IMG/VR virus record: IMGVR_UViG_3300027759_000046
Location: 186,001-250,000 of that record
Length of the DNA: 64,000 nt
Strand: one strand, 5' to 3'
Part shown: piece after piece, positions 18,437 to 34,740 of the stretch
How positions within the stretch are numbered: the stretch's first letter is position 1
How the letters are laid out: every line of letters starts with the position of its first letter
Program-made: the position numbers and the translations under genes
Notes under the pieces: generated by a model
Database searches by the model: none
Seen by the model: only the letters and a program-made list of their open reading frames with translations
Told to the model about the DNA's origin: nothing

Positions 18437-18438
18437 CT

Positions 18439-19356
18439 ATGAAACACCTACTTGAATATAAAATATTTGAATCAGCTGAGAGGATTATTGATGCAACGGC
18501 TGGCGCTGGAACAGATGAGGAATCTCTGGTGCAAGCGATTGCTGGCATTCAAACGCCTGAAGACCTATCTAAAATTGATGCAGAACTTGCTTCAAACCTA
18601 AATTCTGAATATAAAAGCGTAAAAGATGCAATAGCTGGAGAGCTTGGAGTTTTTGATACAGTTTACAAGGACGCAATTGCTCAAAAGTTTAGTCAGTTAG
18701 GTTTGCCTAACTACTTAGAAGACGGAATAATTCCAGTTAAATCAGATAAAGTAGAAAAGACTCAAATTGAAAAACCTATCAAATCTGCCATGGCTGAAAC
18801 ACAAACTCTTTCTCAAGGAAAAATCAATATTAATTCAAATAAATCTGCTCCGTTAATTGTTGTATTCGGTGGAATTGATGTGGGTGGACGATCGAGTGGT
18901 TCTTATATGTATGACTATTTTAAAGAGGCTACTTTATCGAAAGCGACAACATTTATTGCAAATTCTTCAAAAATAGACGGCTCTAAAGCCTGGTCTGAAA
19001 TATCTGGTTTAAACTTAACTCCATCTAAAAAGATTCTCTACCTATTCTCTGGTGGATATTTACCTGGGATGAGCTTGCTAAATAAGGTAGCTGCATCCGA
19101 GTGGGCTGCAATTTATCTAGTTGATATTTGGATAGGTCAAAACTCAAATACTGAGAATTTCTATACAAAACTCACAGCGGACTTTCCTGACAAAGTAAAA
19201 TACTACTATACTGGCGGAGAGAATTCAGCAGGTGGATCCAATAACCTAAAGGCAAAGAAGGAAATGATTGACTCTGTTAGCTATTCAAAGGGTGCAGGCT
19301 CTCACATGGGAGCAAATGATATTGCGGTAAACGACCTTAATGGAGATATCTCCTAG
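18439..19356 (+). CDS. annexin-like repeat fused to an alpha/beta-hydrolase-like domain
   Basis: AERIIDATAGAGTDEESLVQAI...SVKDAIAGELG; later PLIVVFGG, LYLFSGG, final SH; leader MKHLLEYKIFE. Confidence 0.6.
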   Translation: MKHLLEYKIFESAERIIDATAGAGTDEESLVQAIAGIQTPEDLSKIDAELASNLNSEYKSVKDAIAGELGVFDTVYKDAIAQKFSQLGLPNYLEDGIIPVKSDKVEKTQIEKPIKSAMAETQTLSQGKININSNKSAPLIVVFGGIDVGGRSSGSYMYDYFKEATLSKATTFIANSSKIDGSKAWSEISGLNLTPSKKILYLFSGGYLPGMSLLNKVAASEWAAIYLVDIWIGQNSNTENFYTKLTADFPDKVKYYYTGGENSAGGSNNLKAKKEMIDSVSYSKGAGSHMGANDIAVNDLNGDIS

Positions 19357-19979
19357 TCTTCTTTAGTTGATTTAGTATTTCCGAACTTAGATAAGAATAT
19401 GTCGGCAGTCTTCTCAAGAACACTATTGAATGCTGTGTCAGATTCACGAATTGATTTAAAATAGTCAACGAAACCTACCATATCTGCAATTTTATAAGTA
19501 TTAATCTTGACCATATCAGATGAATTTCCGTCAATTGAGACAAATGAATCTCCTGTTACTTTTAAGACAATACCAGTATGACCTTTTCCAGATGAAGCGC
19601 CGCCTCGTGACTTAATAAAGACTTGACCCGGCTGAACCTTTGAGGGATCGCGTGAGTCTATCTTATTTTCAGCAGGTGCAGAATTCCAATGAGACATAAC
19701 TGCTGCAGTTTTAGGTAGAGGATTTTCAATACTAAGTTTTGAACAAAGCTCATCGAACATTGCATAAACGAATGCCATGCACCATGGATTACCTGCGCCT
19801 AGTCCAAGCTTACCGAGCATACCCTTAACCATTGACCCGTCATTATTTCCTTCTTCTTTTTTCCCAACGTAATCTGCTAACACATGACCAAATGTTTCGG
19901 CTGCATTCGTTGCAGTATCAGGTTTAATCGCTAGTTCAGCTTCAGTTATGAATTGATTAAAATCTTTAATAAGTTTCAT
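19353..19979 (-). CDS. CHAP domain amidase/endopeptidase
   Basis: NPWCMAFV, GHTGIV, SIDGNS; leader MKLIKDFNQFITE; GATAAATA at 20000(-). Confidence 0.85.
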   Translation of the reverse strand: MKLIKDFNQFITEAELAIKPDTATNAAETFGHVLADYVGKKEEGNNDGSMVKGMLGKLGLGAGNPWCMAFVYAMFDELCSKLSIENPLPKTAAVMSHWNSAPAENKIDSRDPSKVQPGQVFIKSRGGASSGKGHTGIVLKVTGDSFVSIDGNSSDMVKINTYKIADMVGFVDYFKSIRESDTAFNSVLEKTADIFLSKFGNTKSTKED

Positions 19980-19998
19980 TCTGGATAAATTCTTTGAA

Positions 19999-20226
19999 TT
20001 ATTTATCTAGGATAACCATATCCTTATAGAACATAATTCCAAAGTCCCAGATTAAAAATGTGAATCCTATTACAAATAGACCGGTGTGTACTCCCTGTTC
20101 AATAAACCAGCCGTATGGATTGTAACAGAAAGTCAAATTTGGGATTGGGCAAAATTGCTTGAAGTAGCCCTTTTCCCAAGTTTTGTGGCAATAAGGTTTT
20201 GCCGTAAATTTTAGTTTTGCTTCCAT
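19999..20226 (-). CDS. hypothetical protein
   Basis: 75-aa ORF directly downstream of thyA. Confidence 0.55.
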   Translation of the reverse strand: MEAKLKFTAKPYCHKTWEKGYFKQFCPIPNLTFCYNPYGWFIEQGVHTGLFVIGFTFLIWDFGIMFYKDMVILDK

Positions 20227-20228
20227 AT

Positions 20229-21371
20229 TTAGTTGCTTAGTGGTGCTTTTATTGCTGGGTGTGATTGATAGTTTTCTAATATAATATCATTTATTGAACT
20301 ACAGTGAATGCCGTCTCTAACATGGACAGTTGGTAATTTAAAAGGCTCTCGTGTACGATATGGTATTTTGTATGCATCATAATATTCGCTTAATCCTCCA
20401 CCGAACGGAACTTGCTCATCAACTGCTGTTTGATAAAAATCTCCCATTGCAGTCTTTAACATTTCGTGACGTTCGTCTGGTGAGTAGCTTCTTCCGATTT
20501 GCTCTTCAACTGCATCCACGTGATTTAAGTAAAGGTGAACATCTCCTAGGTTTCCAATCAATTGATCAGGTATCATGTTGACTTCGTCAGCTAGCATAGT
20601 TAATAGTAAGCCATAAGATGCTATGTTGAATGGTAGCCCTAAGAACGTATCTACTGAACGTTGATTCCACATCAAAGAGATTGCTCTGGTTGGTATGTTT
20701 GAACCATCTAACATTTGATGAGTATATGGTGCAAAAGTACGAGCAATACCATCTCTTTTCTTTTTATATTCTGTTCTTTCTTCCAAACTCAACTCTCTTG
20801 TATAAACTTGGAATCCATAGTGACAAGGTGGAAGTACCATCTGGTCCAATTCACCTACATTCCAAGCATTAACCATTAAACGTCTTGAGTCTGGGTTTGT
20901 TTTAAGGTCTTGTATTAGATTTTTGATTTGGTCTACTCCGCCATCAAATATAGCATTCCAATTCCTCCATTGTCTACCATAAATTGGACCCAACTCACCC
21001 CACTTCTTAGCAAACTCTTCATCCTTCATTGACTCGACGAAAGCTTCTTCCTTTGTTACAAAAGGTCCCCAATCGATCACACCATTATGCTTTTCGTAAT
21101 TCTTAATAGCATCACCATTCCAGATATGACAGTTATTATCAATTAGGTACTTGATATTAGTATCACCACGTAAGAACCATAACAGCTCAGTCACAACAGA
21201 TTTGAATGGCATCTTCTTAGTAGTAAGAAGAGGAAATCCTTCTTGCATATTATGACGAATTGTATAGCCGAAGATTGAACGCGTTCCTGTGCCAGTTCGA
21301 TCCTCCTTTACTACACCATATTCATTTATTGCATGAAGTAGATCTATGTACTGTTTATCTAAGTTATTCAT
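20229..21371 (-). CDS. thyA: thymidylate synthase
   Basis: DRTGTGT, FPLLTTKK, ELLWFLRG, LGPIYGRQWR, SRRLMV, LPPCH, QRSVDTFLGLPFNIASY. Confidence 0.97.
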   Translation of the reverse strand: MNNLDKQYIDLLHAINEYGVVKEDRTGTGTRSIFGYTIRHNMQEGFPLLTTKKMPFKSVVTELLWFLRGDTNIKYLIDNNCHIWNGDAIKNYEKHNGVIDWGPFVTKEEAFVESMKDEEFAKKWGELGPIYGRQWRNWNAIFDGGVDQIKNLIQDLKTNPDSRRLMVNAWNVGELDQMVLPPCHYGFQVYTRELSLEERTEYKKKRDGIARTFAPYTHQMLDGSNIPTRAISLMWNQRSVDTFLGLPFNIASYGLLLTMLADEVNMIPDQLIGNLGDVHLYLNHVDAVEEQIGRSYSPDERHEMLKTAMGDFYQTAVDEQVPFGGGLSEYYDAYKIPYRTREPFKLPTVHVRDGIHCSSINDIILENYQSHPAIKAPLSN

Positions 21372-21840
21372 TTATTAACTCTTTTAATCTTTTAATTTCA
21401 GCAATCACATCATCGCCTAATTCAATTTTAGACATCATGGTGAGGTCTGCTACTTGTCCCATAAGTACTTCAATTAATTGAGTTTTTGCATCGTCCTTCG
21501 AGGTTAAGGCTTCTTGGGAAGGCCATATTTGAGAACCGTTTAAGCTGATTGACTTTACTGGATTCGCTGGCGGAGTTCCGTCTAATGCTTTTTCGCCAAC
21601 GTTTTTTAGAGCCTCTCCGCTCATACATGCTGATTCAAATCTTAATTTAACAAAGGTTGAATTGGGAGCAGTTGAGATTGAATTAGGTCTGCAATTTGGC
21701 GAAAACTTAGTAATCATAGTGTTTACAATCTTAGTCGTTTGTGAAATACTAAGAGGATTTGAGTAAACAATAAAGTACTCATTGATTTCTGCTGAATTTC
21801 GATTAAGTAATCGATTTACGAAAGTTATTAGTTTTTTCAT
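21364..21840 (-). CDS. hypothetical protein
   Basis: 158-aa ORF in a tightly packed minus-strand block. Confidence 0.6.
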   Translation of the reverse strand: MKKLITFVNRLLNRNSAEINEYFIVYSNPLSISQTTKIVNTMITKFSPNCRPNSISTAPNSTFVKLRFESACMSGEALKNVGEKALDGTPPANPVKSISLNGSQIWPSQEALTSKDDAKTQLIEVLMGQVADLTMMSKIELGDDVIAEIKRLKELINE

Positions 21841-21843
21841 AGG

Positions 21844-22215
21844 TTATTCTTCTTCTGTTTTGTTTAATAATTGATTATCTGTAATTGCACCAGCAGTCAT
21901 TAGCAATTTAAGTAGGGCTTCAAGGTCAGTAAAGTGCATGCTAATTTGCTCCCTTCTATCCTTTCGTTCGATTGTGATATCCCAACCTTCTCCGTTGGCC
22001 CATTCAGTAACCTCGTAAAAATCGCCTTTCTTGCTCCAAGTGTCATCTTCATTTACGAATAGCTCCCATGACTTTCTCTGATTACTTCCAATTTTGTATT
22101 CTCCCAAAAATGAAGGTTTGAAATTATCGCAAATCGGATCGGCATCCTGTTTTAAGTCTTCAGCCTCAAGCTGAAGTCTTTCAATCTCTTTGGTTATTTG
22201 TGTTAATCTATCCAT
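21844..22215 (-). CDS. hypothetical protein
   Basis: 123-aa ORF; EVTEWANGEGWDI. Confidence 0.7.
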   Translation of the reverse strand: MDRLTQITKEIERLQLEAEDLKQDADPICDNFKPSFLGEYKIGSNQRKSWELFVNEDDTWSKKGDFYEVTEWANGEGWDITIERKDRREQISMHFTDLEALLKLLMTAGAITDNQLLNKTEEE

Positions 22216-22411
22216 GTTGATTATATTTTACATAAAACTCTCGATTTGGGTCGCACGATCCATCGATCGAGTACCAATCCTTTTCAATAGCCTCTTTTAC
22301 CCATTGAGCATCTCGCTCAGTCTCAGTGTAGGCAATTGTTCCAGTTTGTGAAATATCTCCTGTGTCTGGATCAATATCGACAAACACAACTTTCCATTCT
22401 AAATTATTCAT
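22208..22411 (-). CDS. hypothetical protein
   Basis: 67-aa ORF overlapping the next gene's start. Confidence 0.6.
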   Translation of the reverse strand: MNNLEWKVVFVDIDPDTGDISQTGTIAYTETERDAQWVKEAIEKDWYSIDGSCDPNREFYVKYNQHG

Positions 22412-22412
22412 A

Positions 22413-22571
22413 TTAATCAGTTAAATCGTTTGGGTCTTTAGTGTATGCAATATGTTTATTAAACCATTTTGAAAATTTCCAATCAGGAAATCTTCTTTTG
22501 CAAAATTCTCCGAATACAATGAAAGCAAAGGCAATGATCCCTGCTCCAAAATATGCTATTATTCCGTTCAT
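22413..22571 (-). CDS. small membrane protein (52 aa)
   Basis: Read manually: MNGIIAYFGAGIIAFAFIVFGEFCKRRFPDWKFSKWFNKHI...; fills the gap between neighbours. Confidence 0.6.
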   Translation of the reverse strand: MNGIIAYFGAGIIAFAFIVFGEFCKRRFPDWKFSKWFNKHIAYTKDPNDLTD

Positions 22572-22574
22572 TAT

Positions 22575-22934
22575 TTAAAATTTAATTTCTCTAAATGTAC
22601 TTGATCCTGACCAAAATTCGATCACCTCCCCGTTTTTAGGTTGAGGTCTATCGTATTCGGCTCGCATCTTTGCTAATCTTTGGTCAACTGACTTTTTGTC
22701 ATATAAATTCTTAAGTGACTGCCATTCAAGATTTAGATCTTCAATAGTCTCATCACTGAAGTTTTTAGTTATTCCAGCCGGTTCAATTAAGAGCCATTTA
22801 TCAGAATTTAGAACTGACCATTGTGTGCTGGTTGTAACTCCATATAGGAATAGCATTCGAGACTCTTCAATCTCAGCGTGATCTTTAATTAGTTGGTTGA
22901 ACACCAGATTCCCCAAGTCTATTAAGTCCTTCAT
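22575..22934 (-). CDS. hypothetical protein
   Basis: Probable start MKDLIDLG at 22934. Confidence 0.55.
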   Translation of the reverse strand: MKDLIDLGNLVFNQLIKDHAEIEESRMLFLYGVTTSTQWSVLNSDKWLLIEPAGITKNFSDETIEDLNLEWQSLKNLYDKKSVDQRLAKMRAEYDRPQPKNGEVIEFWSGSSTFREIKF

Positions 22935-23526
22935 TGTGTTTTTGTATTGTTTGTTTAATCCAGTCAAAATTAACTGGAGTATAATCGGTCAAGCATGCGC
23001 ATACTGAATAGGCATTCTTGATTGGATGCAAAACTTGGTGTGAGTGACCATATAGGTGATATGATCCGTGAAATTTTCCATTGAATTCCAAGATTGGATA
23101 GTGGAACAGCACAACTCGACGAAAACCGATTTTCTGTTCTGGGTCCGGAAAGAAGATCTCTTCGTAATCTTTAAAGTCAACGATTTTTGCAACTGAACTA
23201 AGTTCCCTGAACCAGTGCTCATCGATATGAGTATCGTGATTGCCTTTTAACCAAACTATATTACCCTTTAACTGGCTAAAAATCCATTTTAGATAACTTA
23301 ATTTAATTCGGTGCATTGAGGCATCTCCTAGGAAGAAAACAGTATCATCCTCCTGTACAACAGAATTCCAACGAGCAATGATCTCATTATCGTGCTCCTC
23401 AATTGATTGGAAATTATGCAAACCTTCTTCAAATCGCAATACGTTATTGTGATCAAAGTGGGGATCGCTTATGAACCAGGTTTTTGCTGGATCGAATATT
23501 TTGTTCTGTGGTATTTGTCCGCTCAT
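22885..23526 (-). CDS. calcineurin-like metallophosphoesterase
   Basis: FISDPHFDH, FLGD, KGNHD, FHYP, GHSH. Confidence 0.92.
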   Translation of the reverse strand: MSGQIPQNKIFDPAKTWFISDPHFDHNNVLRFEEGLHNFQSIEEHDNEIIARWNSVVQEDDTVFFLGDASMHRIKLSYLKWIFSQLKGNIVWLKGNHDTHIDEHWFRELSSVAKIVDFKDYEEIFFPDPEQKIGFRRVVLFHYPILEFNGKFHGSYHLYGHSHQVLHPIKNAYSVCACLTDYTPVNFDWIKQTIQKHNEGLNRLGESGVQPTN

Positions 23527-24587
23527 GTTAGTTTTGTACTAACATACCCAAAAGCGGTTTCGGCGTCACTCATTACCTTAGATCTTTGTTGAAAAGCTAG
23601 ATCAGTTTGAGCCTTATCGTATTTAGACGAAGATGTGTGCTTGTCTATTTTTGTTTTATAAATCTTGACAACTTCCTGTAGGAATTCTTGAGAGTTCTGG
23701 TATTTAGATTTAGGAAGATTGAATGTTCCGTTTTGCTCCAATGTTCTAGCAAACCCCAAGATTCCATTGCAAATCTGCTCAAGGCTTAAGTCAGTCACGT
23801 CAATTCCAGGATGTTGCTCCAAGTACTGATCAAGCTGGACTGCTCTCTTCTCTCCACGAGTAAATTCGTCTGTGAATTCAGCAAGATGGGCCAAGAACCT
23901 GTTAAAATCTCGGGTAACAATTCTCTCTTCAACGTCCTTGCGAAATGCTGGGCTGACTAGCTCACCCGCCTTAATCTTGGCAACAACGCCACGATCAGTT
24001 ACCGAAACTCCGAGCGCATTACCGAATGATTGATATAAGAAACCTACAACAAATCCTTTAATACCTCTAATTGGCGTGTAGCGGGCTTTTGCCCAATCGG
24101 CCGAGTAAGTGAATGTTGGAATAACATCGACTTGCACAGGACCATCAGTTAAATTTATGACCAGTTTGAGGTTGCCTTCAGAGATGGCTTCAGTTTCTTC
24201 AGTATCTAGATCAGGTCGAGTTGATTCAGCCGACCATTGTAAAAAGAGGCTATTATATTTTTTAAGAGTATCAATCTCAACTCGACGACCTTGAGGTTCA
24301 TCAAGTGGATACATTACAAGAATATCAACATCACCGTATGCCTTTTCAGGATTCTCTTCAAGATCCTTTTTAAAATAGACGCCTGAGCCACCTGGTCCAA
24401 CTACTTTTACTGGAGCAAGACCATGTGCCTGGGCCCATTGATTAAAATCTGCAAAGATATTTTCCAGAACCTCAATTGCCTCCTGTAAAACAGCTGGAGT
24501 TATCTTGGTTCCTTGAGTTTTGGTTGTTGCCCAGCCTCCCATTTCATTTATTTGTAAAAAGTCCGTAAATGATTTAATATTCTTCAA
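23523..24587 (-). CDS. Pol-beta superfamily nucleotidyltransferase-like protein
   Basis: GGSG...YGDVDIL...VQVDVI; TTG start with leader MKNIKSFTDFLQINE; GATAAATA at 24609(-). Confidence 0.65.
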   Translation of the reverse strand: MKNIKSFTDFLQINEMGGWATTKTQGTKITPAVLQEAIEVLENIFADFNQWAQAHGLAPVKVVGPGGSGVYFKKDLEENPEKAYGDVDILVMYPLDEPQGRRVEIDTLKKYNSLFLQWSAESTRPDLDTEETEAISEGNLKLVINLTDGPVQVDVIPTFTYSADWAKARYTPIRGIKGFVVGFLYQSFGNALGVSVTDRGVVAKIKAGELVSPAFRKDVEERIVTRDFNRFLAHLAEFTDEFTRGEKRAVQLDQYLEQHPGIDVTDLSLEQICNGILGFARTLEQNGTFNLPKSKYQNSQEFLQEVVKIYKTKIDKHTSSSKYDKAQTDLAFQQRSKVMSDAETAFGYVSTKLT

Positions 24588-24611
24588 AACTTGTGATGTT
24601 CTTTTAGATAT

Positions 24612-25415
24612 TTATCGCTGAACTTCCGGCACCCAGTGAGTTGTGCGCCCGTCTAGAGTCTCTTCACGAACTACAGTATTTCCTTTGGGATCGAGCTTTT
24701 GTGCATAGACTTCAAATTCAAACACGAATTCTCCTTTTTCTCCGCCCAGCCTCTGGTAATTTCTGATACTGGCTCCACCTTGTGCGTATGAAGTTTTCAT
24801 GATTTTCTGAATCCAGTTAAAGAGAACAGCTGTTTCAACTTGATCAATATCTCTGACCAATCTATGCGGCGAAATGCCTGCTCGATAAAGCACTTCGCAT
24901 TTAATATAATTACCTACGCCTGCGCACACTCTCTGATCCATCAGCACCTCAACTATTGTCTTGTTAGGATACTTATTGATTGCTGAATTGAATTTAACTA
25001 GGGTGAACTCTGTATCATTGAGAGCATCTCCACCTAGACTCGCTAATTTCTTGGTGAGCTCAGCTCTATCGTGAGAAAATTTAAGTGTACCGAACCTGCG
25101 TTGATCTACAAAATAGAGTGACCTGGTGTCATCGATACCAATACCAAAGTGCGCGTGCTTATCTGGGTCAGTTGACCAGTAACCGCTCATACCCAATGTA
25201 ATCCACACGGTTGCACCAGTTTCAAGCTCAAGCCACATGAATTTACCCTTGACTCCTCCGCCGACTACTCGGCTTGGCAAGGACACCTCATCAATCCCAA
25301 GTGGTCTTTTTTTAAGAAATCTACCACTAAATACTTGTAACTGTGTTACTTGTGAATCTCCGATCTCTTTTCTGAGATCTTCATACACCCTTCTAACTTC
25401 TGGTCCTTCCGGCAT
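24612..25415 (-). CDS. Fpg/Nei family DNA glycosylase/AP lyase (zincless finger)
   Basis: MPEGPEV start, KGKF, LGMSG, DQRRFG, H2TH LMDQ..AGVGNYIKCE; C-terminus lacks Cys4 (GRTTHWVPEVQ). Confidence 0.93.
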   Translation of the reverse strand: MPEGPEVRRVYEDLRKEIGDSQVTQLQVFSGRFLKKRPLGIDEVSLPSRVVGGGVKGKFMWLELETGATVWITLGMSGYWSTDPDKHAHFGIGIDDTRSLYFVDQRRFGTLKFSHDRAELTKKLASLGGDALNDTEFTLVKFNSAINKYPNKTIVEVLMDQRVCAGVGNYIKCEVLYRAGISPHRLVRDIDQVETAVLFNWIQKIMKTSYAQGGASIRNYQRLGGEKGEFVFEFEVYAQKLDPKGNTVVREETLDGRTTHWVPEVQR

Positions 25416-27985: not shown

Positions 27986-28009
27986 ATTTTTATTATACTC
28001 TGATTAAAC

Positions 28010-28040: not shown

Positions 28041-28045
28041 GGTAT

Positions 28046-28459
28046 CGTGGGGAACGCGTATGGAAGGATTAGGGTTTACCTTCAATTTGATGCTGAGCTT
28101 GCGTTATAACGACAACCTTCGTACACTCCTGTCAGAGTCGACTCAAAGCAAGTTGGATCCGCTTGAATCACTATCGTGTTAACCACAACAGTACGAGTGC
28201 TTTATCCCACCTAGCAAAGGATTATTCAGCCATTTAACGGGACTATTTTATACCCGTATGCCGATTGCAAAATACCATATATGTATATCAAAACCTTAGA
28301 CTCCAGTGGTTAACTGGTTCAAGTTGACCGTTTGGTCTGCTGGTTTCAGCCAGCGCTTGCGGAGCATCCTCCTAATCTAAACCATTACCTGTTTTACAAT
28401 CAGGTTGTTCTGGCACATACTCGATTGAAGCTCATGACTTCCTCAACCGTTTCCCCTCG
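28046..28459 (-). ncRNA. candidate large structured non-coding RNA (~415 nt), family unassigned
   Basis: No ORF of 60 aa or more; complementary termini; many internal hairpins and long-range pairings; boxA-like GTTCTTTAAA just upstream; terminator just downstream. Confidence 0.7.
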
Positions 28460-28483
28460 TAATTTAAAGAACTTATGTTAATA

Positions 28484-28699
28484 TTATAACGCTAATTCGG
28501 ATTTCGGTTTTACTTTTAGCGAATTTTTTTCTAAAAAAGTTTGAAAACCTTCGTAGATGTAATTCGTTGTGCACTTAGTCGACTGTTGCAGAGTCTTTAT
28601 GTAGGTGTGGCCGTTGGGCGCTAAGTAAAATCCAATTACAGTTTCTTCGCCTTGATCGCCAATCAGGATCAAGTCTTCAAGTTGAATTGAGTCTCTCAT
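28484..28699 (-). CDS. hypothetical protein
   Basis: 71-aa ORF coupled to the upstream gene (ATGA overlap). Confidence 0.6.
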   Translation of the reverse strand: MRDSIQLEDLILIGDQGEETVIGFYLAPNGHTYIKTLQQSTKCTTNYIYEGFQTFLEKNSLKVKPKSELAL

Positions 28700-28914
28700 T
28701 GTTTTTTATAGCGTCTGCGAAAGAAGATAGAGAGCCCAAAGAATAGAGCCGCAATACAGTACAATACGAAATTCGCTCTCCACAAAGTCCCAGTGAGGTG
28801 GATTAGCCAGTACTGGACGATGTCGAACCCGAACGGATTGAAGAACAGAGCTATCATCGCGCACCATGTCGCTAGGTTGCCCAATAACGTTTTTCTCCAA
28901 GTTTCTACTATCAC
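28696..28914 (-). CDS. small membrane protein (2 TM)
   Basis: ALFFNPFGFD, two hydrophobic helices, basic tail. Confidence 0.65.
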   Translation of the reverse strand: MIVETWRKTLLGNLATWCAMIALFFNPFGFDIVQYWLIHLTGTLWRANFVLYCIAALFFGLSIFFRRRYKKQ

Positions 28915-28962
28915 TATCCATAGATTTTTTGAAATTTGTAAATTCGAGTTTATTTATCCAGT

Positions 28963-29244
28963 TTACCACTTCGCTTCTTGACCAATATCCGGTAGAGCAC
29001 AATGAAATCCTTGTAGTCTAGTTTTGGCCTCAAGAAAACAGCCGCAAATTTTACACTGAACGAATGTTGGATTGAAATGATCGCATGCTTTACATAAGTC
29101 CATGCGACGAGTCTTTTCAATTTCCGGAACAAAAACCTTGTTCAAGATTCTTGACATTACTGTCGGTTGGCTTGATGTTTGAGAACCGCCGCCGCATCCA
29201 CAATTAGCTGTGGTCGTTTCAGTAGTTTGGTTAGTTTCTGACAT
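28963..29244 (-). CDS. Cys-rich metal-binding protein (DUF6171-like)
   Basis: R..CKAC...CKICGCFL..K.....C......KW. Confidence 0.75.
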   Translation of the reverse strand: MSETNQTTETTTANCGCGGGSQTSSQPTVMSRILNKVFVPEIEKTRRMDLCKACDHFNPTFVQCKICGCFLEAKTRLQGFHCALPDIGQEAKW

Positions 29245-30219
29245 TTAATCTAATACTTTTTCAAAGACTCTTTTATCATCAAACTCCAGGTAGTTTTCAA
29301 GTAATTTACCTGAATTCTGACGATACTGAAGTACTGCAAGATCTTTGGCCTTTGCCTCAACCTCGATATCGAAAGTGAGTCCATAAGTATTTATCTTCTC
29401 ATAAACATGATCGGCATGTGAACGTGCAATAACCGTAGGATCCTCGAACGTTTTCCTACAGCTTGAATAGTGAGTAAGAGGTGTATGGCCGTGCCAAGTA
29501 GTCGAAGCAAGACGTAGCGCGGCTTCCTCAGTAAGATCGCCAGTATTGAAACGGTGATGATGGAAATCGAATGTGATTGGCGTGCCGATTTTGCAATAGA
29601 CTAACGAGTAAAGATCGGCAACTGAATACTGGGCAGCCTTATCGTCGTTTTCGACAACTAGACGAGCTTTTGTATTTGGGTGTAATACTTTAAAATTCTC
29701 GCAGAACCTAGCGGCAGCCGATTCCCTGTCGCCATAGGATCCACCTAGATGAATATTAATTGGGAACTGATAGGTAATAGGTAAACCCATTAAGGTCATA
29801 ATCTCGGCATGCTGGTTAAGATCCTTGATTGTTTTACGAACAACATTTGGATTTGGAGAACACAAGACATCGAACTGGCCTGGATGCATTGAGATACGCA
29901 TGCCATGCTGTAGCGCAAATTCGCCAATTGCTTGCAGATCAGGTAGAATATCGGCAAAGTTAGGTAACTCAGTAATCTCGTACTCGGACATCCATGGAAA
30001 GATATCGCTAGACATACGATACACAAAGATATCGTTTGCAAGATTCCAGCGCAGAATTTTAAGAATGTCCTTGACGTTTTGATGAGCGAGCTCGCCACAA
30101 TATACTTGACCCTTTTCCTGAAAGGTTCTCTTGATCATGCCACGGTTGGCTGTAATCTTTTGGTCGGCTAGTGATAAGTTAATACAGCAGTAGCCAAGTC
30201 TGACGTTAGAATTTTGCAT
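29245..30219 (-). CDS. uvsE: UV DNA damage endonuclease
   Basis: RLGYCCIN, YRMSSD, RISMHPGQF, INIHLGG, RLVVENDD, FDFHHH, HAD, EAKAKD; start MQNSN at 30219. Confidence 0.93.
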   Translation of the reverse strand: MQNSNVRLGYCCINLSLADQKITANRGMIKRTFQEKGQVYCGELAHQNVKDILKILRWNLANDIFVYRMSSDIFPWMSEYEITELPNFADILPDLQAIGEFALQHGMRISMHPGQFDVLCSPNPNVVRKTIKDLNQHAEIMTLMGLPITYQFPINIHLGGSYGDRESAAARFCENFKVLHPNTKARLVVENDDKAAQYSVADLYSLVYCKIGTPITFDFHHHRFNTGDLTEEAALRLASTTWHGHTPLTHYSSCRKTFEDPTVIARSHADHVYEKINTYGLTFDIEVEAKAKDLAVLQYRQNSGKLLENYLEFDDKRVFEKVLD

Positions 30220-30232
30220 AGGTTTATTATAC

Positions 30233-30258
30233 AAAAAAAGGGACCGTAAGGTCCCTTT
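30233..30258 (-). terminator. intrinsic terminator
   Basis: AAAGGGACC-gtaa-GGTCCCTTT. Confidence 0.85.
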
Positions 30259-30277
30259 GATTTATAGTAAGCGGTTT

Positions 30278-30907
30278 TTAGAAATTAACCGATGAATAGT
30301 TTTTCGTAATTGACCTCAATACTCTCACAACGTCAACTGCGTCCTGTAGAGCATCGTGTGTTACGATTCCGTCAATGCCTGCTCGCTTCATGCACTCAGC
30401 CAAATTCGGTAAACCTGCATCCTTTGTCCAATCCATGCACAAGATAGCTGGATCAATCATGCGTTGTCTGATCTGTACTGATGATGACCATCCTGTCAGT
30501 TTTTGCAGAAAGAGTTTATCAAATGTTGCAAAGTTTTTACCAGCAACGGTGATTCGGACTTGACCAGTTTTTGAGTCTGGATCGCCTAATCCGTTTGCCT
30601 GCAACCATAAGCCGAATGATTTTGCAACGAGGCCTTCGGGTAAGATATTGTATTTCTTACGCAAGTCAGCTCGCTCTTCTTTATTCGCTCGTTCCAATTC
30701 GCCAAGCTGAGCCAGAATATCCTTATTCATGACCAGTGCAAATGGGCTGCCTGTGTATTGAGGGTGTTCAACTAGACACTTAAATCTAGGCAGGTCCTCA
30801 ATAGGTAATGGATTAGCTGTGTCCTCAATAACTGCACCGATCTGAATCGTTTGGCAAGTTTCTGGATCTAATCCCGTTGTTTCTATGTCTATTGATACGT
30901 ATTTCAT
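30278..30907 (-). CDS. DEDDh 3'-5' exonuclease
   Basis: SIDIETTGL, GKNFATFD, HDALQDA. Confidence 0.9.
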   Translation of the reverse strand: MKYVSIDIETTGLDPETCQTIQIGAVIEDTANPLPIEDLPRFKCLVEHPQYTGSPFALVMNKDILAQLGELERANKEERADLRKKYNILPEGLVAKSFGLWLQANGLGDPDSKTGQVRITVAGKNFATFDKLFLQKLTGWSSSVQIRQRMIDPAILCMDWTKDAGLPNLAECMKRAGIDGIVTHDALQDAVDVVRVLRSITKNYSSVNF

Positions 30908-30927
30908 GTAGTCTATTATACTATAGG

Positions 30928-31344
30928 TTAAAAAGGAAGGCTATCATCGCTCCAGTTAAAATCAGTTTCGGCTTGAGGTTTACTTGGTGTTGTATCAATA
31001 TCGCCGAATACATCGTCATCAAATTCTCCAGCATCAGCAGTTATGCCAATTGGACCGGATTTTTTCTGACCACTAATTCTCCAAGCCTCAAGGGTTGTGA
31101 AATATTTTACTGATCCTAATTTGTCTGTCCAGTCTCGGCCTTTTACGTCGAATGCAACTGAAACAGTATCGCCAATATCGAATGACTCTAGCATATCGCA
31201 TTTGTCTTGTACCAATTGGAAAAGGATTTTTTGTGGGTACTTATCTCCCACCTCAATTACGAATTCGCGTTTACGAAATCCCTTATTGAAAGTTTGCGCT
31301 GGGAACATCTCAATGATCGTTCCGGTTAATTCAAATTTATTCAT
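30928..31344 (-). CDS. DUF3127 family putative ssDNA-binding protein
   Basis: FRKREFVIE..DKYPQ, GRDW, YFTTLEAWRI, acidic tail ending DDSLPF. Confidence 0.85.
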   Translation of the reverse strand: MNKFELTGTIIEMFPAQTFNKGFRKREFVIEVGDKYPQKILFQLVQDKCDMLESFDIGDTVSVAFDVKGRDWTDKLGSVKYFTTLEAWRISGQKKSGPIGITADAGEFDDDVFGDIDTTPSKPQAETDFNWSDDSLPF

Positions 31345-31345
31345 G

Positions 31346-31825
31346 TTAGAAATCTGGGTTTGTTATTTTTATATCGTAGTTTTGGAAATTTTCAAAGTCT
31401 TTGCGATCAGCCTCAATACGGCGATCAACTGAGTCGCCTGGCATATTACGGTGAGTCATACGTTCACGCCTAACCTCTTCATCAATATCAATAAAGATTA
31501 CCAATGAATCTTTACGGGAGTCATCAGACAGGTGAGCTAAGCCGCTTGGTGTCATGATGAATATGTCATCCTCTTCAAATTGAGTTCGAGTAGTTCCGTA
31601 AATCCAGCCGTTAAACTCAACGTATTCATAGAACTCGTCATTTTTAATTAGACTCGCCGCCTGTTCTGGAGTCAAGAAGAAATAGTCTTGTCCATCAACT
31701 TCGCCTTCTCTTGGCGGGCGTGTTGTGTAACTAACTGCGTATTTAAAGCCGCGTGATTCAAATTTTTTGCGAAGGTAATCTTTGCCGCTTGCAGCACGAC
31801 CTACTATGATTATTCGTTTATGCAT
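31346..31825 (-). CDS. gmk: guanylate kinase-like protein
   Basis: GRAASGKD, SYTTRPPREGEVDGQDYFF, YGT. Confidence 0.88.
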   Translation of the reverse strand: MHKRIIIVGRAASGKDYLRKKFESRGFKYAVSYTTRPPREGEVDGQDYFFLTPEQAASLIKNDEFYEYVEFNGWIYGTTRTQFEEDDIFIMTPSGLAHLSDDSRKDSLVIFIDIDEEVRRERMTHRNMPGDSVDRRIEADRKDFENFQNYDIKITNPDF

Positions 31826-31831
31826 ATATGA

Positions 31832-33130
31832 TTAAAATTCTCTTTGTGTTTCGTATACTGTTTTAATAACTGGAAATCTTAATGAGTGGTTTCCGTGTTG
31901 ATCAGTCGTTTCTTCAAAAAACTGAACCGTAATTGTTTTACCTAAAATTTCATTTGGGTTTTGAAAGTAGTGGCGACGTTGTTCAAGAGAAAAACCTGAT
32001 CCAACTCTGACTTGATTGCCTTTATGCTGAACGAATACTGCTTTCAGCATTTCCTCTTCTTCTTCACGGCCGTTTTCAATAACTCGGTGAGTTCCGTTTT
32101 CAAGACCAGTTACTTGATACTCAGCATCATGCATCTTTTTAACCTTTAACAGGTTCTTTGAGCGTTTGCCTTCGTATCCAACATCCTTACGAATCATGAT
32201 GCCTTCGTATCCCATTTCAGTTGCATCAGCTGCAACCTTTTCAAAATGTTCTCGATCAGTTAATTTGAATTGAGGCAATGGCTCTGCGAATTCCAGTCCA
32301 GTACTCGATGCCACCAAGTAAGCATTTATCATGACTAACCTAGCAGATAGAGTTATTTCGCTTGTTCCGCTTGTAAATTCGTCAAGATCCAATAGGTCAA
32401 ATACATAATACTTTGGAGTTTCAATAGTGTGGTCCTTTTTGCCTATTTCTTTGATAATCCCCTGAAAATCTTCAAGGCCAGAATCTCGCATGATACAAAC
32501 TTCGCCATCTAGAACTTTAGACCTAAGACCCAATTTCATAAGGTCTTGGCGTAAAGCATCGAGAGTTAAGAACTCCTTGCCTTGACGAGAAAAGAACTTA
32601 ATATCACCAGCTTCATCAATTACGGTGATGCAACGAACTCCGTCTAGCTTACGACTTGCCCACCACATACCTGAATCAAAATCTACTTTCTTCTCAGCCG
32701 ATTCAAATTTTTCAGCTAATGCAACTTCAAAGGTCGGCACTGTCCCAGGCAGGACAGAATTGATTAAGGTAGAGGTTGCTCGGGTTTTAATATTGCGATC
32801 TATCACATCATAGATGATGTCTGCGAACTCCTTATATTTTGCGATAAAACCATTAACTGCTTGTATTGCATTGTGGCCAGTCACATGACGTTCATTCAGA
32901 TCATCAAGCATCGCAAACAGATCAGTATAATTATCGAAAATTAGGTCAGATCTCTTTTTGAGATTTGCTGAAGTAACATGATACTGCTTAAATGGCGTGT
33001 ACGTGTACTTAAATATTTTTCGTAGGAATGGAGAATCGTATTTTTGCAGAATCTCTTTTTTGGCATTAGTCGAAGAAGTAGCTTTCATCTCTTCAATAAA
33101 CTCCCTAAGGTTGGTAAAGTCTGTATGCAT
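31832..33130 (-). CDS. ATP-dependent DNA ligase
   Basis: SRKLDGVRC, LDGEV, YVFD, EGIMIR, LLKVK, VGSGFS, SLRFP. Confidence 0.95.
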   Translation of the reverse strand: MHTDFTNLREFIEEMKATSSTNAKKEILQKYDSPFLRKIFKYTYTPFKQYHVTSANLKKRSDLIFDNYTDLFAMLDDLNERHVTGHNAIQAVNGFIAKYKEFADIIYDVIDRNIKTRATSTLINSVLPGTVPTFEVALAEKFESAEKKVDFDSGMWWASRKLDGVRCITVIDEAGDIKFFSRQGKEFLTLDALRQDLMKLGLRSKVLDGEVCIMRDSGLEDFQGIIKEIGKKDHTIETPKYYVFDLLDLDEFTSGTSEITLSARLVMINAYLVASSTGLEFAEPLPQFKLTDREHFEKVAADATEMGYEGIMIRKDVGYEGKRSKNLLKVKKMHDAEYQVTGLENGTHRVIENGREEEEEMLKAVFVQHKGNQVRVGSGFSLEQRRHYFQNPNEILGKTITVQFFEETTDQHGNHSLRFPVIKTVYETQREF

Positions 33131-33153
33131 ACAATTATTATACTATACAAAAC

Positions 33154-33183
33154 AAAAAAAGTCGACACTAGGCCGACTTTTTC
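33154..33183 (-). terminator. intrinsic terminator
   Basis: AAAAAGTCG-loop-CGACTTTTT. Confidence 0.7.
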
Positions 33184-33201
33184 ATAAAAATATTTAGTTA
33201 A

Positions 33202-34740
33202 TTATCTTCTAACCTTTAGGAAGTCAGAGAATGAAGTAATCACAGTAGCTTCAGAAACTGCGGTAAATCCTCCTTGTTGACCGCCTTGTTGACCGCCTTG
33301 AACAGGAGTCTTTTGCATGTCTTGGGAAATCTTATCAACTTGTTGAGCAAGAGGTCCTCCACCTGTAATACCGGCCCAATAGCCGTTACATAGAGAAAGC
33401 ATGTCTCCGCTTATTTCAGAAGCAACGCAGTACTCGTAAAAGTCTCCGTCTTCTCCAAAATTCTTAGACCATACTTGTTTAACAACTGCTGCTGTTTGTG
33501 GGCTAAGTGAAGTGATCATGAAGGTGATTTGTAATTCGTCAGCTCCGTCAGTATAACCTTTTGCTAATTCTCTAATTTGAGTACAGAATGCAAATGCTGC
33601 ATCTTCAGCTGTGAAGTTTTGAGCTTGAACTGGTTCTGCACCGCTTGCTGCGGCTGAGAGAGCTCCGCCTGTTGCCATTCCGGCACCAACTCCTGCTCCG
33701 ATTTTTCCACCGACTTGAGCAGCTTTGCCTGCTTGAGTTAAGGTTGAGAAACCTGATTGAGCTGCTCTAAAGTCATTTGCACCAGCTGCCAGTCTTGAAA
33801 CGTTTGCCGCTCCTTGAACTCCAACACCAGTTGCTTCAGCTCCAGTTGTTGCCATTGCACCGCTTCTAAATGCTGTGAAACCTCCTCTTAATTTATTAAC
33901 GGCTCCAGCTGCTCTAACCGCTCTAGCTCCAGTAATAAGGCCTTTTGCCGCGGCTCCTACACCGAATGTACAAAGCCCAATCGCAACGTCTACTACCAAT
34001 GATTCTAGAAAATCTACTCCCATTCCGGTCGCAATATCTTGTTCAGTAACGGTATCACCGTAAACTGCTCTAGCTAAAACTTCAGGAGTTCCAGAGAAAT
34101 CTCCTTTAACCGCATCCATTAGGGACTCATTATATGCTGTCTGATATGCAGTACCTAATGCTTTGAATATTTCTGGCACGTTTGCACCTTTTTCGTAACC
34201 AATACGATAGATTGCTCCAGCTAATGCACCAAGCTTGTCTTCGTCTGTTCCAAAATTTAATCCGAAAATTGAACTTCCTTCAACACCCTTTCTAAATTGA
34301 GTTGCTAAGTAATTCATATCTAAACCTTCGATTACCTTAGACGTTGAATCCCAATCAATATAAACTCCAGATTTTCCAGACGCGGTTTTACCGCCAGCTA
34401 CATAGATTGAAACTGCGTATTCTTGGTCTCCGATTTTTACGGTAACTCGACCTGGACCAGATTGGCCAGACGCTACTAAGTTTGCAGACTCAGCGTTAAG
34501 CTTTAAGAATTCTGCGTCCGCTTTATCGCCTTTGCTAGCATTATCAATAATTAATTTCTTGATTGCCTGAACTTCCGGAGAATCAGTTGGTTCAATTGAA
34601 ATGGTATTACCTTCAGGTTTTGCACCAGGCGAACCGGCTGTGCCAGCGGTACCAGCTGAACCGGCTTCAGTTAGCGAATAGTAGCCCAAAGACTTGCTCT
34701 CGTTTAATATTGCGTAATTTCCTATGTTTATGTGTCTCAT
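33202..34740 (-). CDS. protein with two annexin-like repeats flanking a hydrophobic Gly/Ala-rich region
   Basis: FGTDEDKL...AYQTAYNESLMDAVKGDFSG and GADELQITFMI...CVASEISGD; leader ends ILNE. Confidence 0.65.
   Translation of the reverse strand: MRHINIGNYAILNESKSLGYYSLTEAGSAGTAGTAGSPGAKPEGNTISIEPTDSPEVQAIKKLIIDNASKGDKADAEFLKLNAESANLVASGQSGPGRVTVKIGDQEYAVSIYVAGGKTASGKSGVYIDWDSTSKVIEGLDMNYLATQFRKGVEGSSIFGLNFGTDEDKLGALAGAIYRIGYEKGANVPEIFKALGTAYQTAYNESLMDAVKGDFSGTPEVLARAVYGDTVTEQDIATGMGVDFLESLVVDVAIGLCTFGVGAAAKGLITGARAVRAAGAVNKLRGGFTAFRSGAMATTGAEATGVGVQGAANVSRLAAGANDFRAAQSGFSTLTQAGKAAQVGGKIGAGVGAGMATGGALSAAASGAEPVQAQNFTAEDAAFAFCTQIRELAKGYTDGADELQITFMITSLSPQTAAVVKQVWSKNFGEDGDFYEYCVASEISGDMLSLCNGYWAGITGGGPLAQQVDKISQDMQKTPVQGGQQGGQQGGFTAVSEATVITSFSDFLKVRR

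Follow-up and report, generated by a model that had tools for sequence, protein, structure and literature searches.

Highly divergent annexin-like repeats in candidate virion-cargo proteins of a T4-like jumbo phage

Introduction

Eukaryotic annexins (A5, A2, A6; PF00191) have a core of four repeats, each about 70 residues long and formed by five helices. Bacterial annexins are domains of a single or a few repeats, combined with enzymatic domains (metallopeptidases, a Microscilla marina lipase, toxins) and with TM regions, while no annexins were found in viruses (Kodavali et al. 2014, PMC3894181). In toxins delivered by PVC particles a single annexin domain precedes the enzymatic toxin domain, and a suggested role of this domain is to assist in breaching the membranes of target cells (Zhang, Aravind et al. 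2012, PMC3482391). A precedent for the leaders described below is the biology of the T4 capsid-targeting (CTS) leader (PMC9026906, PMC3012670).

Here, we describe three annexin-repeat proteins (pA, pB and pC) of a T4-like jumbo phage with a genome of 253 kb and 287 ORFs. We analysed a stretch of 64,000 nucleotides of this genome, the window, which contains the genes of pA and pB; pC is encoded outside it (Table 1).

Like eukaryotic annexins, the phage proteins have the five-helix repeat of about 70 residues, the G-x-G-T-(D/E)-E motif in the AB loop and, some 40 residues further on, an acidic cap, and in the model of pB the two repeats pack as an annexin half-core. Unlike them, they are viral, contain one (pA, pC) or two (pB) repeats and stay below the Pfam gathering score. 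The AB loop of pB unit 1 and the C-D region of pA and pC contain insertions, and the repeats are joined to enzymes or, in pB, separated by a hydrophobic insert of about 145 residues. With the bacterial annexins they share the joining of one or few repeats to enzymatic domains, whereas a fusion with GH24 lysozyme or PG_binding_1 and CTS-like propeptides are not described in Kodavali et al. 2014.

The closest analogue of the pA and pC architecture is found in the PVC/eCIS-delivered toxins, where one annexin domain is also located N-terminal to an enzymatic effector, and which are thought to be delivered by a contractile machine of phage-tail type. There the cargo of the tail-like particle consists of toxins against other cells, whereas pA and pC are proteins of a true phage, carry wall or ester hydrolases and have a loading signal resembling the T4 capsid-targeting leader. 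Their genes lie in a phage genome that also encodes a terminase, a baseplate wedge protein and a prohead protease, and pA and pC are not eCIS members; by analogy they may nevertheless work like eCIS annexin effectors.

The phage also resembles T4 with its internal proteins and Alt in having a short (L/I)xE propeptide on many unrelated proteins and a Peptidase_S77 gene, and pB may have an Alt-like C-terminal propeptide. However, the T4 cargo consists of anti-restriction and ADP-ribosylating proteins bound for the cytoplasm, with neither an annexin nor a wall hydrolase among the known ones, and the proteins described here are putative head cargo.

Results

Genes and genomic setting

An earlier note had placed annexin-like repeats between positions 18439 and 34740 of the window. 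This region also covers some 20 genes that have nothing to do with the repeats (ThyA, Fpg, UvdE, ligase and others), and only the two genes at its ends, pA and pB, are relevant. Both ORFs are present and contain exactly the strings quoted, and the annexin-like repeats are found there by profile, fold and protein-language-model features. There are 334 clusters homologous to pA and 41 homologous to pB (42-95% identity); in a 45%-identical relative the gene order of pB beside the ligase is kept. Three neighbours of the pA gene encode leader-bearing proteins with wall-related domains. The one directly upstream matches VanY in Pfam (E 6.7e-13) and the PHROG endolysin family phrog_181 (E 1.2e-22).

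Table 1. Location of the annexin-repeat proteins, their parts and the neighbours of pA. Positions refer to the window, except for pC.
Feature	Position	Strand	Residues	Description
Neighbour	16819..17193	+	124 aa	Leader MLKKFDEFNETLNE and PG_binding_1 (Pfam PF01471, 27.2 bits)
Neighbour	17186..18436	+	416 aa	Leader MIKGFDQFTGKINE, VanY peptidase and endolysin/chitinase-like domain
pA gene	18439..19356	+	305 aa	Leader, one annexin-like repeat, linker, alpha/beta-hydrolase
pA leader	18439..18471	+	1-11	MKHLLEYKIFE, last three I-F-E; putative CTS-like propeptide
pA annexin-like repeat	18472..18708	+	12-90	G22-x-G24-T25-D-E27 ... E68
pA C-terminal domain	18793..19353	+	119-305	Lid-less alpha/beta-hydrolase (esterase/lipase-like); S204, D229, H289 conserved
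Neighbour	19353..19979	-	208 aa	Leader MKLIKDFNQFITE and CHAP peptidoglycan hydrolase (Pfam CHAP, E 9.5e-8)
pB gene	33202..34740	-	512 aa	Leader, small N-domain, annexin unit 1, Ala/Gly-rich region, annexin unit 2, tail
pB leader	34699..34740	-	1-14	Last three L-N-E; variant of the CTS-like propeptide
pB annexin unit 1	34045..34335	-	136-232	
pB central region	33610..34044	-	233-377	Ala/Gly-rich, net basic, hydrophobic; small-xxx-small motifs
pB hydrophobic helix	33925..34011	-	~244-272	TM-grade; invariant D251, G255, T258, G260, A264, G267
pB annexin unit 2	33331..33609	-	378-470	Degenerate AB loop K-G-Y-T-D-G-A-x-E-L
pB C-terminal tail	33205..33330	-	471-512	Q/G-rich, then V-S-E, then leader-like S-F-S-D-F-L
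pC	genome 171610-172434			Propeptide, one annexin repeat, then GH24 lysozyme; outside the window

Annexin homology of the repeats

The motif G.GT[DN]E occurs twice in the 287 ORFs, against 0.15 occurrences expected from composition. When the profile of the pA module is searched against PDB with hmmsearch, the first 38 out of 38 matches are annexins before any non-annexin appears (best E 7.4e-10). For the profile of pB unit 1 all 45 top matches are annexins (best E 2.9e-8), and pB unit 2 has no significant sequence match in the profile search against PDB.

We also compared the phage units, using hhalign, with a set of 40 bona fide annexin repeats that were certified by Pfam. The pA/pC module (97.6%, E 4.3e-12) and pB unit 1 (97.3%, E 1.8e-11, 66 of 69 columns) match this set, as does pB unit 2 at a lower level (67.6%, E 5e-5, in register across 62 columns). 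In the reverse direction, a search with the phage module against 1.84e9 proteins returned 216 matches. Three of the 40 multi-repeat matches tested contain an eCIS core domain.

In structural comparisons with Foldseek, a check proposed in the earlier note, the best 50 PDB matches of the pB AF2 model are all annexins. Among the best 30 AFDB clusters, 29 are annexins or unnamed, and in ESM Atlas the clusters that lie closest to the phage modules consist of bacterial annexins. Annexin sets also account for 78 of the 100 ESM-feature matches of the pA repeat and 63 of the 100 of pB unit 2. The superposition of the pB model on annexins supports a right-handed superhelical fold of five helices and about 70 residues, and in pA five helices are predicted between residues 13 and 86.

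The likeness could in principle be due to chance, or to convergence of a short GTDE-containing helical motif in what would be generic helical linkers. The Pfam Annexin model gives this some room, as every phage unit stays below its gathering score (16-20 bits against 25): pB unit 1 obtains 16.3 bits when the full protein is searched, 20.2 when the fragment is searched and 18 in a scan of the genome, and pA has no match to the model. Of the Pfam PF00191 and profile check that had been suggested, the profile similarity stands, by hhalign and against PDB, while the Pfam gathering score is missed. The phage units also have no recognisable similarity to one another by hhalign, and although VIA-align superposes the pB model on annexins over 150-214 residues (model residues 136..462) with Z up to 12.1, a Z of about 12 falls in the range where the tool itself warns about helical repeats. 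Chance is nonetheless hardly credible, given that the matches in PDB, AFDB and ESM Atlas are almost exclusively annexins and that 39 of the 40 multi-repeat proteins from the reverse search carry Pfam Annexin. Further, the hhalign alignments stay in register from one end of the repeat to the other and take in its distal acidic cap, and the negative control, the pA/pC module against PG_binding_1, is clean (1.4%). The phage repeats are almost certainly annexin homologues, although highly divergent ones.

The two-repeat protein pB

In pB unit 1 (pLDDT 87-90 in the AF2 model) a hydrophobic insertion of seven residues (SSIFGLN) is located in the AB loop ahead of GTDED, and the B-C segment is lengthened; distant relatives have the canonical loop A-G-L-G-T-D-E. 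By its sequence pB unit 2 appears weakly annexin-like, which had been overlooked earlier. It lacks the second glycine of GxGT, and E442 is invariant within S-E-[IL]-S-G-D. In the AF2 model the two units together superpose on the annexin repeat pairs I/IV or II/III, and the second repeat is predicted to pack on the first as in an annexin half-core, with modest confidence in the inter-domain packing (pTM 0.54).

A hydrophobic Gly/Ala segment had been reported between the two repeats, and both the composition and one TM-grade stretch agree with this. Alanine makes up 24% and glycine 18% of residues 233-380, the region contains 20 [GAS]xxx[GAS]xxx[GAS] motifs, and residues 266-346 have ten K/R against two D/E. 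The Kyte-Doolittle maximum is 1.85, in a 19-residue window from residue 247. We found no annexin signal in this central region, which is well conserved in the family and modelled with a pLDDT below 50.

At the C-terminus, 13 of 30 family members keep the motif [IV]xE followed by (L/I)K(S/T)FxDF(L/Y). Such C-termini are found in only three of the 287 ORFs, pB among them, and by analogy with T4 Alt the tail is possibly a C-terminal propeptide.

Single-repeat proteins and the putative Ca2+ site

Each single repeat forms the N-terminal module of an enzyme, an alpha/beta-hydrolase in pA and a GH24 lysozyme in pC, which the earlier note had missed. The AF2 model of pA (mean pLDDT 79.5) has five predicted helices in the repeat (13-20, 27-35, 40-52, 61-68, 74-86). 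Its modelled C-terminal domain is an alpha/beta-hydrolase fold with a predicted Ser-Asp-His triad in canonical order: S204 at a strand-helix elbow, D229 following a strand and H289 preceding the final helix. All of 121 sequences have S204 and D229, and at least 90% of them have H289. Foldseek and VIA align about 173 residues of this domain with feruloyl esterases, lipases and monoglyceride lipases, with Z up to 13.5.

In pC, Phage_lysozyme (PF00959) obtains 40.5 bits (E 4e-10, cut-off 22.3 bits), and the catalytic pattern E-x8-D-x5-T is visible in the sequence, which corresponds to the E-9-D-6-T spacing of T4-like lysozymes. The corresponding residues of its putative Ca2+ site are G-L-G-T ... 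E.

In pA, pC and 45 single-repeat relatives, one annexin domain precedes an enzymatic domain. In the relatives the module precedes Phage_lysozyme (11 out of 45), PG_binding_1 (9 out of 45), TseH, Pesticin and Beta-lactamase2 domains. Pfam Annexin detects only one of the 45, and the phage modules form a separate subfamily. Across 47 single-repeat modules with an overall identity of about 11%, conservation is highest at GxGT...E, which corresponds to the type II Ca2+ site of annexins: G22 91%, G24 98%, T25 100%, E27 91%, E68 98%, G70 89% and D73 91%. The sequences thus contain a putative type II site, G-x-G-T with an acidic residue about 38 positions downstream; in pA it would be G22-A-G24-T25 ... 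E68, with 42 residues between. By analogy with annexins, the phage modules may bind Ca2+ and phospholipid.

The repeat could alternatively bind the wall or glycans as an equivalent of PG_binding_1; its ligand would then be peptidoglycan, LPS phosphates or some other anionic polysaccharide instead of phospholipid bilayers, with Ca2+ as a possible mediator. In relatives of pA, PG_binding_1 precedes the hydrolase domain at the very place where pA has its annexin repeat, in single-repeat proteins the partner domains include muramidases and further hydrolases of the wall, and an annexin A2 heparin complex (2hyu) is among the structural matches of pB. We consider this unlikely: the module has no sequence relation to PG_binding_1, its conserved residues are exactly those of the annexin phospholipid/Ca2+ site, and in pB the repeats accompany a membrane-type segment, while a wall hydrolase is absent. 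The nine relatives that contain PG_binding_1 can be read either way, as a further tie to the wall or, with both modules in one protein, as an argument against redundancy.

Leaders and prohead protease

The leader reported on pA and pB as resembling a capsid-targeting sequence is a recurrent N-terminal motif, of which both have looser variants. CTS-like leaders ending in (L/I)xE are found at 16 of the 287 ORF N-termini, against 1.4 expected from internal positions, using a regular expression that was written after seeing examples and that misses the variants of pA (I-F-E11) and pB (L-N-E14). In length the leaders are similar to the T4 CTS, with which they also share aromatic residues near positions 4 and 7 and the (L/I)xE ending; they are present on some 16-20 otherwise unrelated proteins. 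Close relatives of pA keep its leader, and M1, Y9, A10 and E14 of the pB leader are nearly invariant across the family. A gp21-type prohead protease is encoded at genome positions 65965-66306 on the minus strand (Peptidase_S77, 35.2 bits, above the cut-off), and we infer that both leaders are cleaved. By analogy with T4, pA, pB and pC would be packaged into the head and ejected.

The recognisable DNA-metabolism enzymes of the window (ThyA, Fpg, UvdE, exonuclease, guanylate kinase, ligase) have no leader. All recognisable peptidoglycan hydrolases examined do have one, including pC, the sole Phage_lysozyme match in the 253-kb genome, so there is no obvious leaderless endolysin and a role in lysis has to be weighed. 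The proteins would then act from inside the cell as infection ends, pA and pC as endolysin-type enzymes and pB as a holin-like membrane protein, and the leader would serve a purpose other than head packaging. This would account for pC being the one Phage_lysozyme match, for the leaders on the VanY/endolysin-like and CHAP proteins beside pA, and for the TM-grade helix of pB. We regard it as quite improbable, because a T4 CTS-like leader is present on so many unrelated proteins in a genome with a gp21-type protease, none of the sequences has a signal peptide or SAR-like N-terminus, and, from established annexin biochemistry, cytoplasmic Ca2+ would be too low for annexin-type binding. To our knowledge, known holins are unlike pB with its 512 residues and two soluble domains. 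Against the cargo reading, head-packaged wall hydrolases are, as far as we know, a feature of podoviruses such as T7 and atypical of T4-like myoviruses.

Discussion

The best explanation of these observations, to which we give about an even chance, is that pA, pB and pC are proteins of virion-cargo type with divergent annexin repeats. The 11-14-residue (L/I)xE propeptide would send them into the prohead core, where the gp21-type protease would cut after the glutamate, as in T4. At infection they would leave the virion via the contractile tail. Once in the periplasm, where Ca2+ is present, the conserved GxGT...E loop would bind this ion, which would bridge to phosphates of anionic envelope lipids, as annexin biochemistry suggests, and wall- or ester-cleaving enzymes would thereby be held at the interface between membrane and wall. 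The protein pB may dock likewise, with its hydrophobic segment entering the membrane and helping to open a path for the DNA. The functional chain as a whole, from propeptide to membrane docking, is more tentative and falls somewhat short of an even chance. The termini of annexin repeats sit on the face opposite the Ca2+ loops, so the hydrophobic insert of pB would emerge away from the lipid-binding face, which counts against the mechanism.

A precedent for a wall-degrading enzyme acting on ejection is T7 gp16, a head-packaged ejection protein with a transglycosylase domain. Mycobacteriophage lysins of LysB type combine PG_binding_1 with an alpha/beta-hydrolase esterase. By domain architecture the relatives of pA resemble them, with PG_binding_1 followed by an esterase-like alpha/beta-hydrolase, whereas pA has an annexin repeat where the wall-binding domain would be.

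We found no description of annexins in phages in the literature searched, and Kodavali et al. 2014 reported finding none in viruses, in line with the earlier note, which knew of no such role. The phage repeats seem to be the first annexin domains of viral origin to be described. Since the annexin module takes the place of PG_binding_1 in pA, an envelope-targeting module of wall- or ester-cleaving cargo would fit better than a generic membrane-engaging protein.

Annexin homology of pA and pB

Annexins are a textbook eukaryotic family of Ca2+- and membrane-binding proteins whose distribution in bacteria is sparse and debated. The earlier note quoted annexin-like strings from two ORFs, and the strings are present in both encoded proteins: pA, in which a leader and one annexin-like repeat precede an alpha/beta-hydrolase, and pB, with an annexin-like unit on each side of its centre. 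The Pfam search proposed there (PF00191) matches pB below the cut-off of 25 bits (16.3 bits for the whole protein, 20.2 for a fragment, 18 in the genome scan) and does not match pA; the profile similarity was found with family profiles. Scans of PHROGs and NCBIfam gave no family for either protein, and tblastn of pA, pB and the module of pC, a third annexin-bearing protein, against 50,697 GenBank phage records gave no match. Homologues of pA form 334 clusters and those of pB 41 clusters (42-95% identity).

In the PDB, the best 45 matches of the pB unit 1 profile are all annexins (top E 2.9e-8), as are all 38 matches of the pA N-terminal module before the first non-annexin (top E 7.4e-10). Against a reference alignment of 40 repeats taken from Pfam-certified annexins, hhalign gave 97.3% for pB unit 1 (E 1.8e-11, 66/69 columns), 97.6% for the pA/pC module (E 4.3e-12) and 67.6% for pB unit 2 (E 5e-5), where the register is kept from the K-G loop to S-G-D. 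The control of annexin against PG_binding_1 gave 0.2%. The pA/pC module compared with the PG_binding_1 of pA's own relatives gave 1.4%, which removes the idea, hinted at by a MAFFT alignment, that the C-terminal half of the module is a diverged PG_binding_1. Compared with one another, the units show no direct link (pB unit 1 with unit 2 0.2%, pB unit 2 with the pA module 0.2%, pB unit 1 with the pA module 14%); a link between them runs through annexins only.

A reverse search with the pA/pC module over 1.84 billion representatives found 216 matches at E 1e-3 or better, and Pfam Annexin is present in 39 of the 40 multi-repeat matches scanned. With protein-language-model features, annexin clusters account for 78/100 matches of the pA module and 63/100 of pB unit 2. 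A resemblance by chance is largely excluded. For pB unit 2, an EF-hand was considered on account of one match, at E 0.036, to an S100-A4 loop within a fusion chain; we reject it as a chance match, since loop positions 1 and 5 lack acidic residues and the fold and language-model evidence speaks for an annexin. We conclude that pB unit 1, the pA module and pB unit 2, the three units of the window, are homologous to annexins, on strong evidence for the first two and on moderate evidence for the third.

Structural model of pB

The AlphaFold-plus-Foldseek check suggested in the earlier note was run for pB and returned annexins. The AF2 model is confident for unit 1 (pLDDT 87-90) and for most of unit 2 (80-91), and its pLDDT falls below 50 in the centre. 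The best 50 Foldseek matches in the PDB are all annexins, and VIA-align reaches a Z of 12.1 with 150-214 residues aligned over model positions 136..462. Among the AFDB clusters, 29 of the best 30 matches are annexins or unnamed, and the ESM Atlas likewise returns annexins. In BFVD, the database of viral structures, there is no match at E 0.001 or better and none of the matches is named annexin; the top one is an uncharacterised Caudovirales protein (E 0.04). According to the model, units 1 and 2 superpose on the annexin repeat pairs I/IV or II/III, i.e. the pair is predicted to be an annexin half-core.

Ala makes up 24% and Gly 18% of residues 233-377, which confirms the hydrophobic Gly/Ala segment described between the repeats. 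It opens with a helix of transmembrane grade (Kyte-Doolittle 1.85) in which one Asp is invariant and Gly and Ala form a ladder; the remainder is net basic and has many small-xxx-small motifs. Few parts of the protein are better conserved than the centre, and AF2 gives it no placement. We considered whether these 145 residues could be a degenerate form of annexin repeats II/III, which their length would allow; the profiles gave no signal there and the composition is unlike annexin, which leaves the idea unsupported. The C-terminal tail carries a motif conserved in 13/30 family members and nearly unique within the genome; by analogy with T4 Alt it may be a C-terminal propeptide.

Coordinates of the features (window positions unless marked as genome or L003, the genome stretch around pC)
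Feature	Position	Strand	Description
pA	18439-19356	+	305 aa
pB	33202-34740	-	512 aa
pB C-terminal tail	33205-33330	-	Q/G-rich run, V-S-E, then leader-like S-F-S-D-F-L-K
pC	genome 171610-172434 = L003:3611-4435	-	274 aa; leader (L-N-E end), one annexin-like repeat, GH24 Phage_lysozyme
Leader-bearing ORFs (examples)	4199, 8715, 11402, 14040, 16819, 17186, 19979(-), 24587(-), 26986, 35971(-), 39268(-), 62724
Envelope-active gene cluster	16819-19979		four adjacent leader-bearing genes
Linker-rich protein	34763-35971	-	402 aa, directly upstream of pB
ATP-grasp enzyme	36084-37208	+	YheC/D type
ORF-poor region	~900-3150		about 2.2 kb without ORF >101 aa
GC-rich ORF	3152-4177		341 aa
GC-rich ORF near pC	L003:6015-6683 (genome ~174014-174682)	+	just upstream of pC region
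tmRNA	61539-61907	+	full length

Putative Ca2+ site

Conservation was computed over 47 single modules, which are about 11% identical overall. In pA numbering, the best-conserved residues are G22 (91%), G24 (98%), T25 (100%), E27 (91%), E68 (98%), G70 (89%) and D73 (91%), and four core hydrophobic positions are also kept. By their pattern these residues are the putative annexin type II Ca2+ site, G-x-G-T plus a distal acidic cap; the two parts are 42 residues apart, not 38, because of an insertion between helices C and D. In pB unit 1 the loop contains a seven-residue hydrophobic insertion, SSIFGLN, in 25/30 family members, and it is canonical (A-G-L-G-T-D-E) in the most distant ones. In pB unit 2 the loop is degenerate (K-G-Y-T-D) and the acidic cap is kept.

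Domain architectures

The C-terminal 187 residues of pA form a lid-less alpha/beta-hydrolase according to structure comparison (Z up to 13.5), with feruloyl esterases, lipases and monoglyceride lipases as the best matches. Over 121 sequences S204 and D229 never vary, and H289 hardly does. Most of the 334 pA relatives have PG_binding_1 before the catalytic domain, and the annexin module takes this place only in the closest 20 or so. The module might, by analogy with PG_binding_1, bind wall, glycan or LPS; we consider this role unlikely. In one metagenomic relative (P0063) VanY and PG_binding_1 are fused directly to a pA-type hydrolase.

A search of the whole genome with three unit HMMs found pC as the sole additional annexin-bearing protein (E 1.2e-16). 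Its repeat is 36% identical to that of pA, and its Phage_lysozyme domain scores 40.5 bits, with the Glu/Asp/Thr spacing of T4 lysozyme visible in the sequence. Genes around pC also bear leaders (MKHIKLFENW..., MKTQVKRFTEFLAE..., MKHLKLFENYARE...). Among 45 single-repeat matches, Phage_lysozyme occurs in 11 and PG_binding_1 in 9, while TseH, Pesticin and Beta-lactamase2 are each found on single members; only one of the 45 reaches Pfam Annexin. Many of these relatives begin with a leader of the same kind, and nine IMG/VR loci carry the module, the longest of their viral contigs reaching 252 kb. From the architectures of pA, pC and the 45 relatives, the leaders and these loci we conclude that phage enzymes that cleave walls or esters repeatedly carry, as judged from sequence, a single annexin repeat as their N-terminal module.

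Other metagenomic proteins, among them P0211, P0227, P0282, P0284 and P0310, have a different recurrent leader (...L(M/L)MKYD.SKTLNEN..., ...EEKNRILSLHES...) before the same annexin-like module. A propeptide type of their own, ending in LxE, may be in use in other phage lineages.

Leaders and genome setting

The capsid-targeting-like leaders are borne out by counting: the motif M-(K/R)-x(2-8)-aromatic-x-x-aromatic-...-(L/I/F)-x-E is found at the N-terminus of 16/287 ORFs, where the rate at internal positions predicts 1.4. pA (MKHLLEYKIFE) and pB have looser variants, and with such variants there are about 20 leaders in the window alone. The recognisable DNA-metabolism enzymes of the window (ThyA, Fpg, UvdE, exonuclease, guanylate kinase, ligase) have none, and most leader-bearing ORFs have no Pfam or PHROG family. 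In T4, a 10-residue CTS sends internal proteins into the prohead; its residues 4 and 7 control targeting, and residues 8 and 10 control cleavage by gp21 after Glu (PMC9026906; PMC3012670). The leaders here closely resemble this CTS, so that packaging is suggested by analogy, and the ORFs that bear them may amount to a very large group of candidates for head-packaged cargo. The contig has 253,137 bp, is about 94% complete and includes the window as bases 186001-250000. Among its genes are those for a large terminase, a baseplate wedge protein and, at 35.2 bits for Peptidase_S77, a prohead protease of the T4 gp21 type. Terminases of huge uncultured phages, of Sphingomonas phage PAU, of Tenacibaculum phage PTm1 and of the Prevotella Lak phages share 30-38% identity with the one encoded here; with such relatives a Gram-negative host is likely.

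The envelope-active gene cluster consists of a PG_binding_1 protein, a VanY plus endolysin-like protein, pA and an opposite-strand CHAP hydrolase. The genes between pA and pB are unrelated and include those for thymidylate synthase, Fpg, UvdE, an exonuclease, guanylate kinase and a DNA ligase. None of the genes discussed is broken, and none codes for a toxin against humans, animals or crops. The linker-rich protein bears a leader and two long Gly-Thr/Ser-rich low-complexity linkers; one segment resembles a PG_binding_1 motif (D-G-N-Y-G-P-N-T...), with no significant Pfam match. The ATP-grasp enzyme (Pfam E 7.4e-55) adjoins the putative cargo genes and has a loosely leader-like N-terminus (MKYLFEFAQY...).

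Elsewhere, the tmRNA matches Rfam RF00023 with 113.8 bits, and its tag peptide is predicted by ARAGORN as GNTNFWSLVNAGVSTPVTEELLAA. The ORF-poor region has patchy GC, up to 0.55, and is followed by the GC-rich ORF (0.52-0.56 vs a genome mean of about 0.38); this stretch (~900-4177) matches neither an Rfam family nor, by blastn, any GenBank phage. The GC-rich ORF near pC reads as an HTH followed by resolvase-like sequence, by eye a serine recombinase, and may be a mobile insertion.

Proposed role

The earlier note proposed Ca-dependent membrane-engaging ejection proteins, and part of this stands: the annexin homology with a conserved Ca2+ site and its occurrence on leader-bearing enzymes. Everything past that point is what we infer. 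In the best-supported reading, pA, pB and pC would be head-packaged, protease-trimmed cargo released at infection. The annexin modules would bind anionic envelope lipids by means of Ca2+ and place the lysozyme and the esterase at the interface of membrane and wall; they would also dock pB, whose hydrophobic segment would then enter the membrane. The same enzymes could instead serve lysis from within, as pC is the sole Phage_lysozyme match in the genome; leaders are present on all wall hydrolases looked at. We regard lysis from within as quite improbable.

Returning to ejected cargo, a bolder version, which we think rather improbable, takes the proteins to be the first annexins of viruses, serving as a Ca2+ switch that would keep dangerous cargo off in the producer and turn it on in the periplasm. 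Nanomolar cytoplasmic Ca2+ would keep the modules off, so that the producer cell could synthesise and package pB, pA and pC without damage. Once ejected into the Ca2+-rich periplasm, the modules would latch onto anionic lipids and position the enzymes, and the latching would trigger insertion of pB as a DNA conduit. If true, myoviruses would have their own counterpart of the podovirus ejectosome, in parallel with the eCIS effectors that bear annexins.

Bacterial annexins have been described with one to five repeats and with fusions to metallopeptidases, a lipase or toxins, and the only systematic survey we found lists none in viruses (PMC3894181). Literature searches for phage annexins turned up no relevant paper. 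The nearest parallel, in domain layout and in the logic presumed behind it, is seen in toxins delivered by the phage-tail-like PVC, which often have a single annexin domain before the enzymatic domain, proposed to help breach target membranes (Zhang et al., PMC3482391). Unlike these toxins, pA, pB and pC come from a true phage and begin with T4-like propeptides; the annexin repeats are linked to peptidoglycan or ester hydrolases, and in pB a membrane-type segment splits the annexin pair.

The phage-borne annexin subfamily, at 216 representative clusters, escapes standard models and is a mobile reservoir that bears on the origin and transfer of the annexin domain. Its module would be a new envelope-targeting type for phage wall-degrading enzymes, beside PG_binding_1, LysM and SH3. 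Together with the other leader-bearing ORFs, about 20 in number, the annexin proteins point to many tractable candidates for ejected proteins in an uncultured jumbo-phage lineage, and, if Ca2+-dependent lipid binding holds, the module would be usable to tether lysins to Gram-negative membranes.
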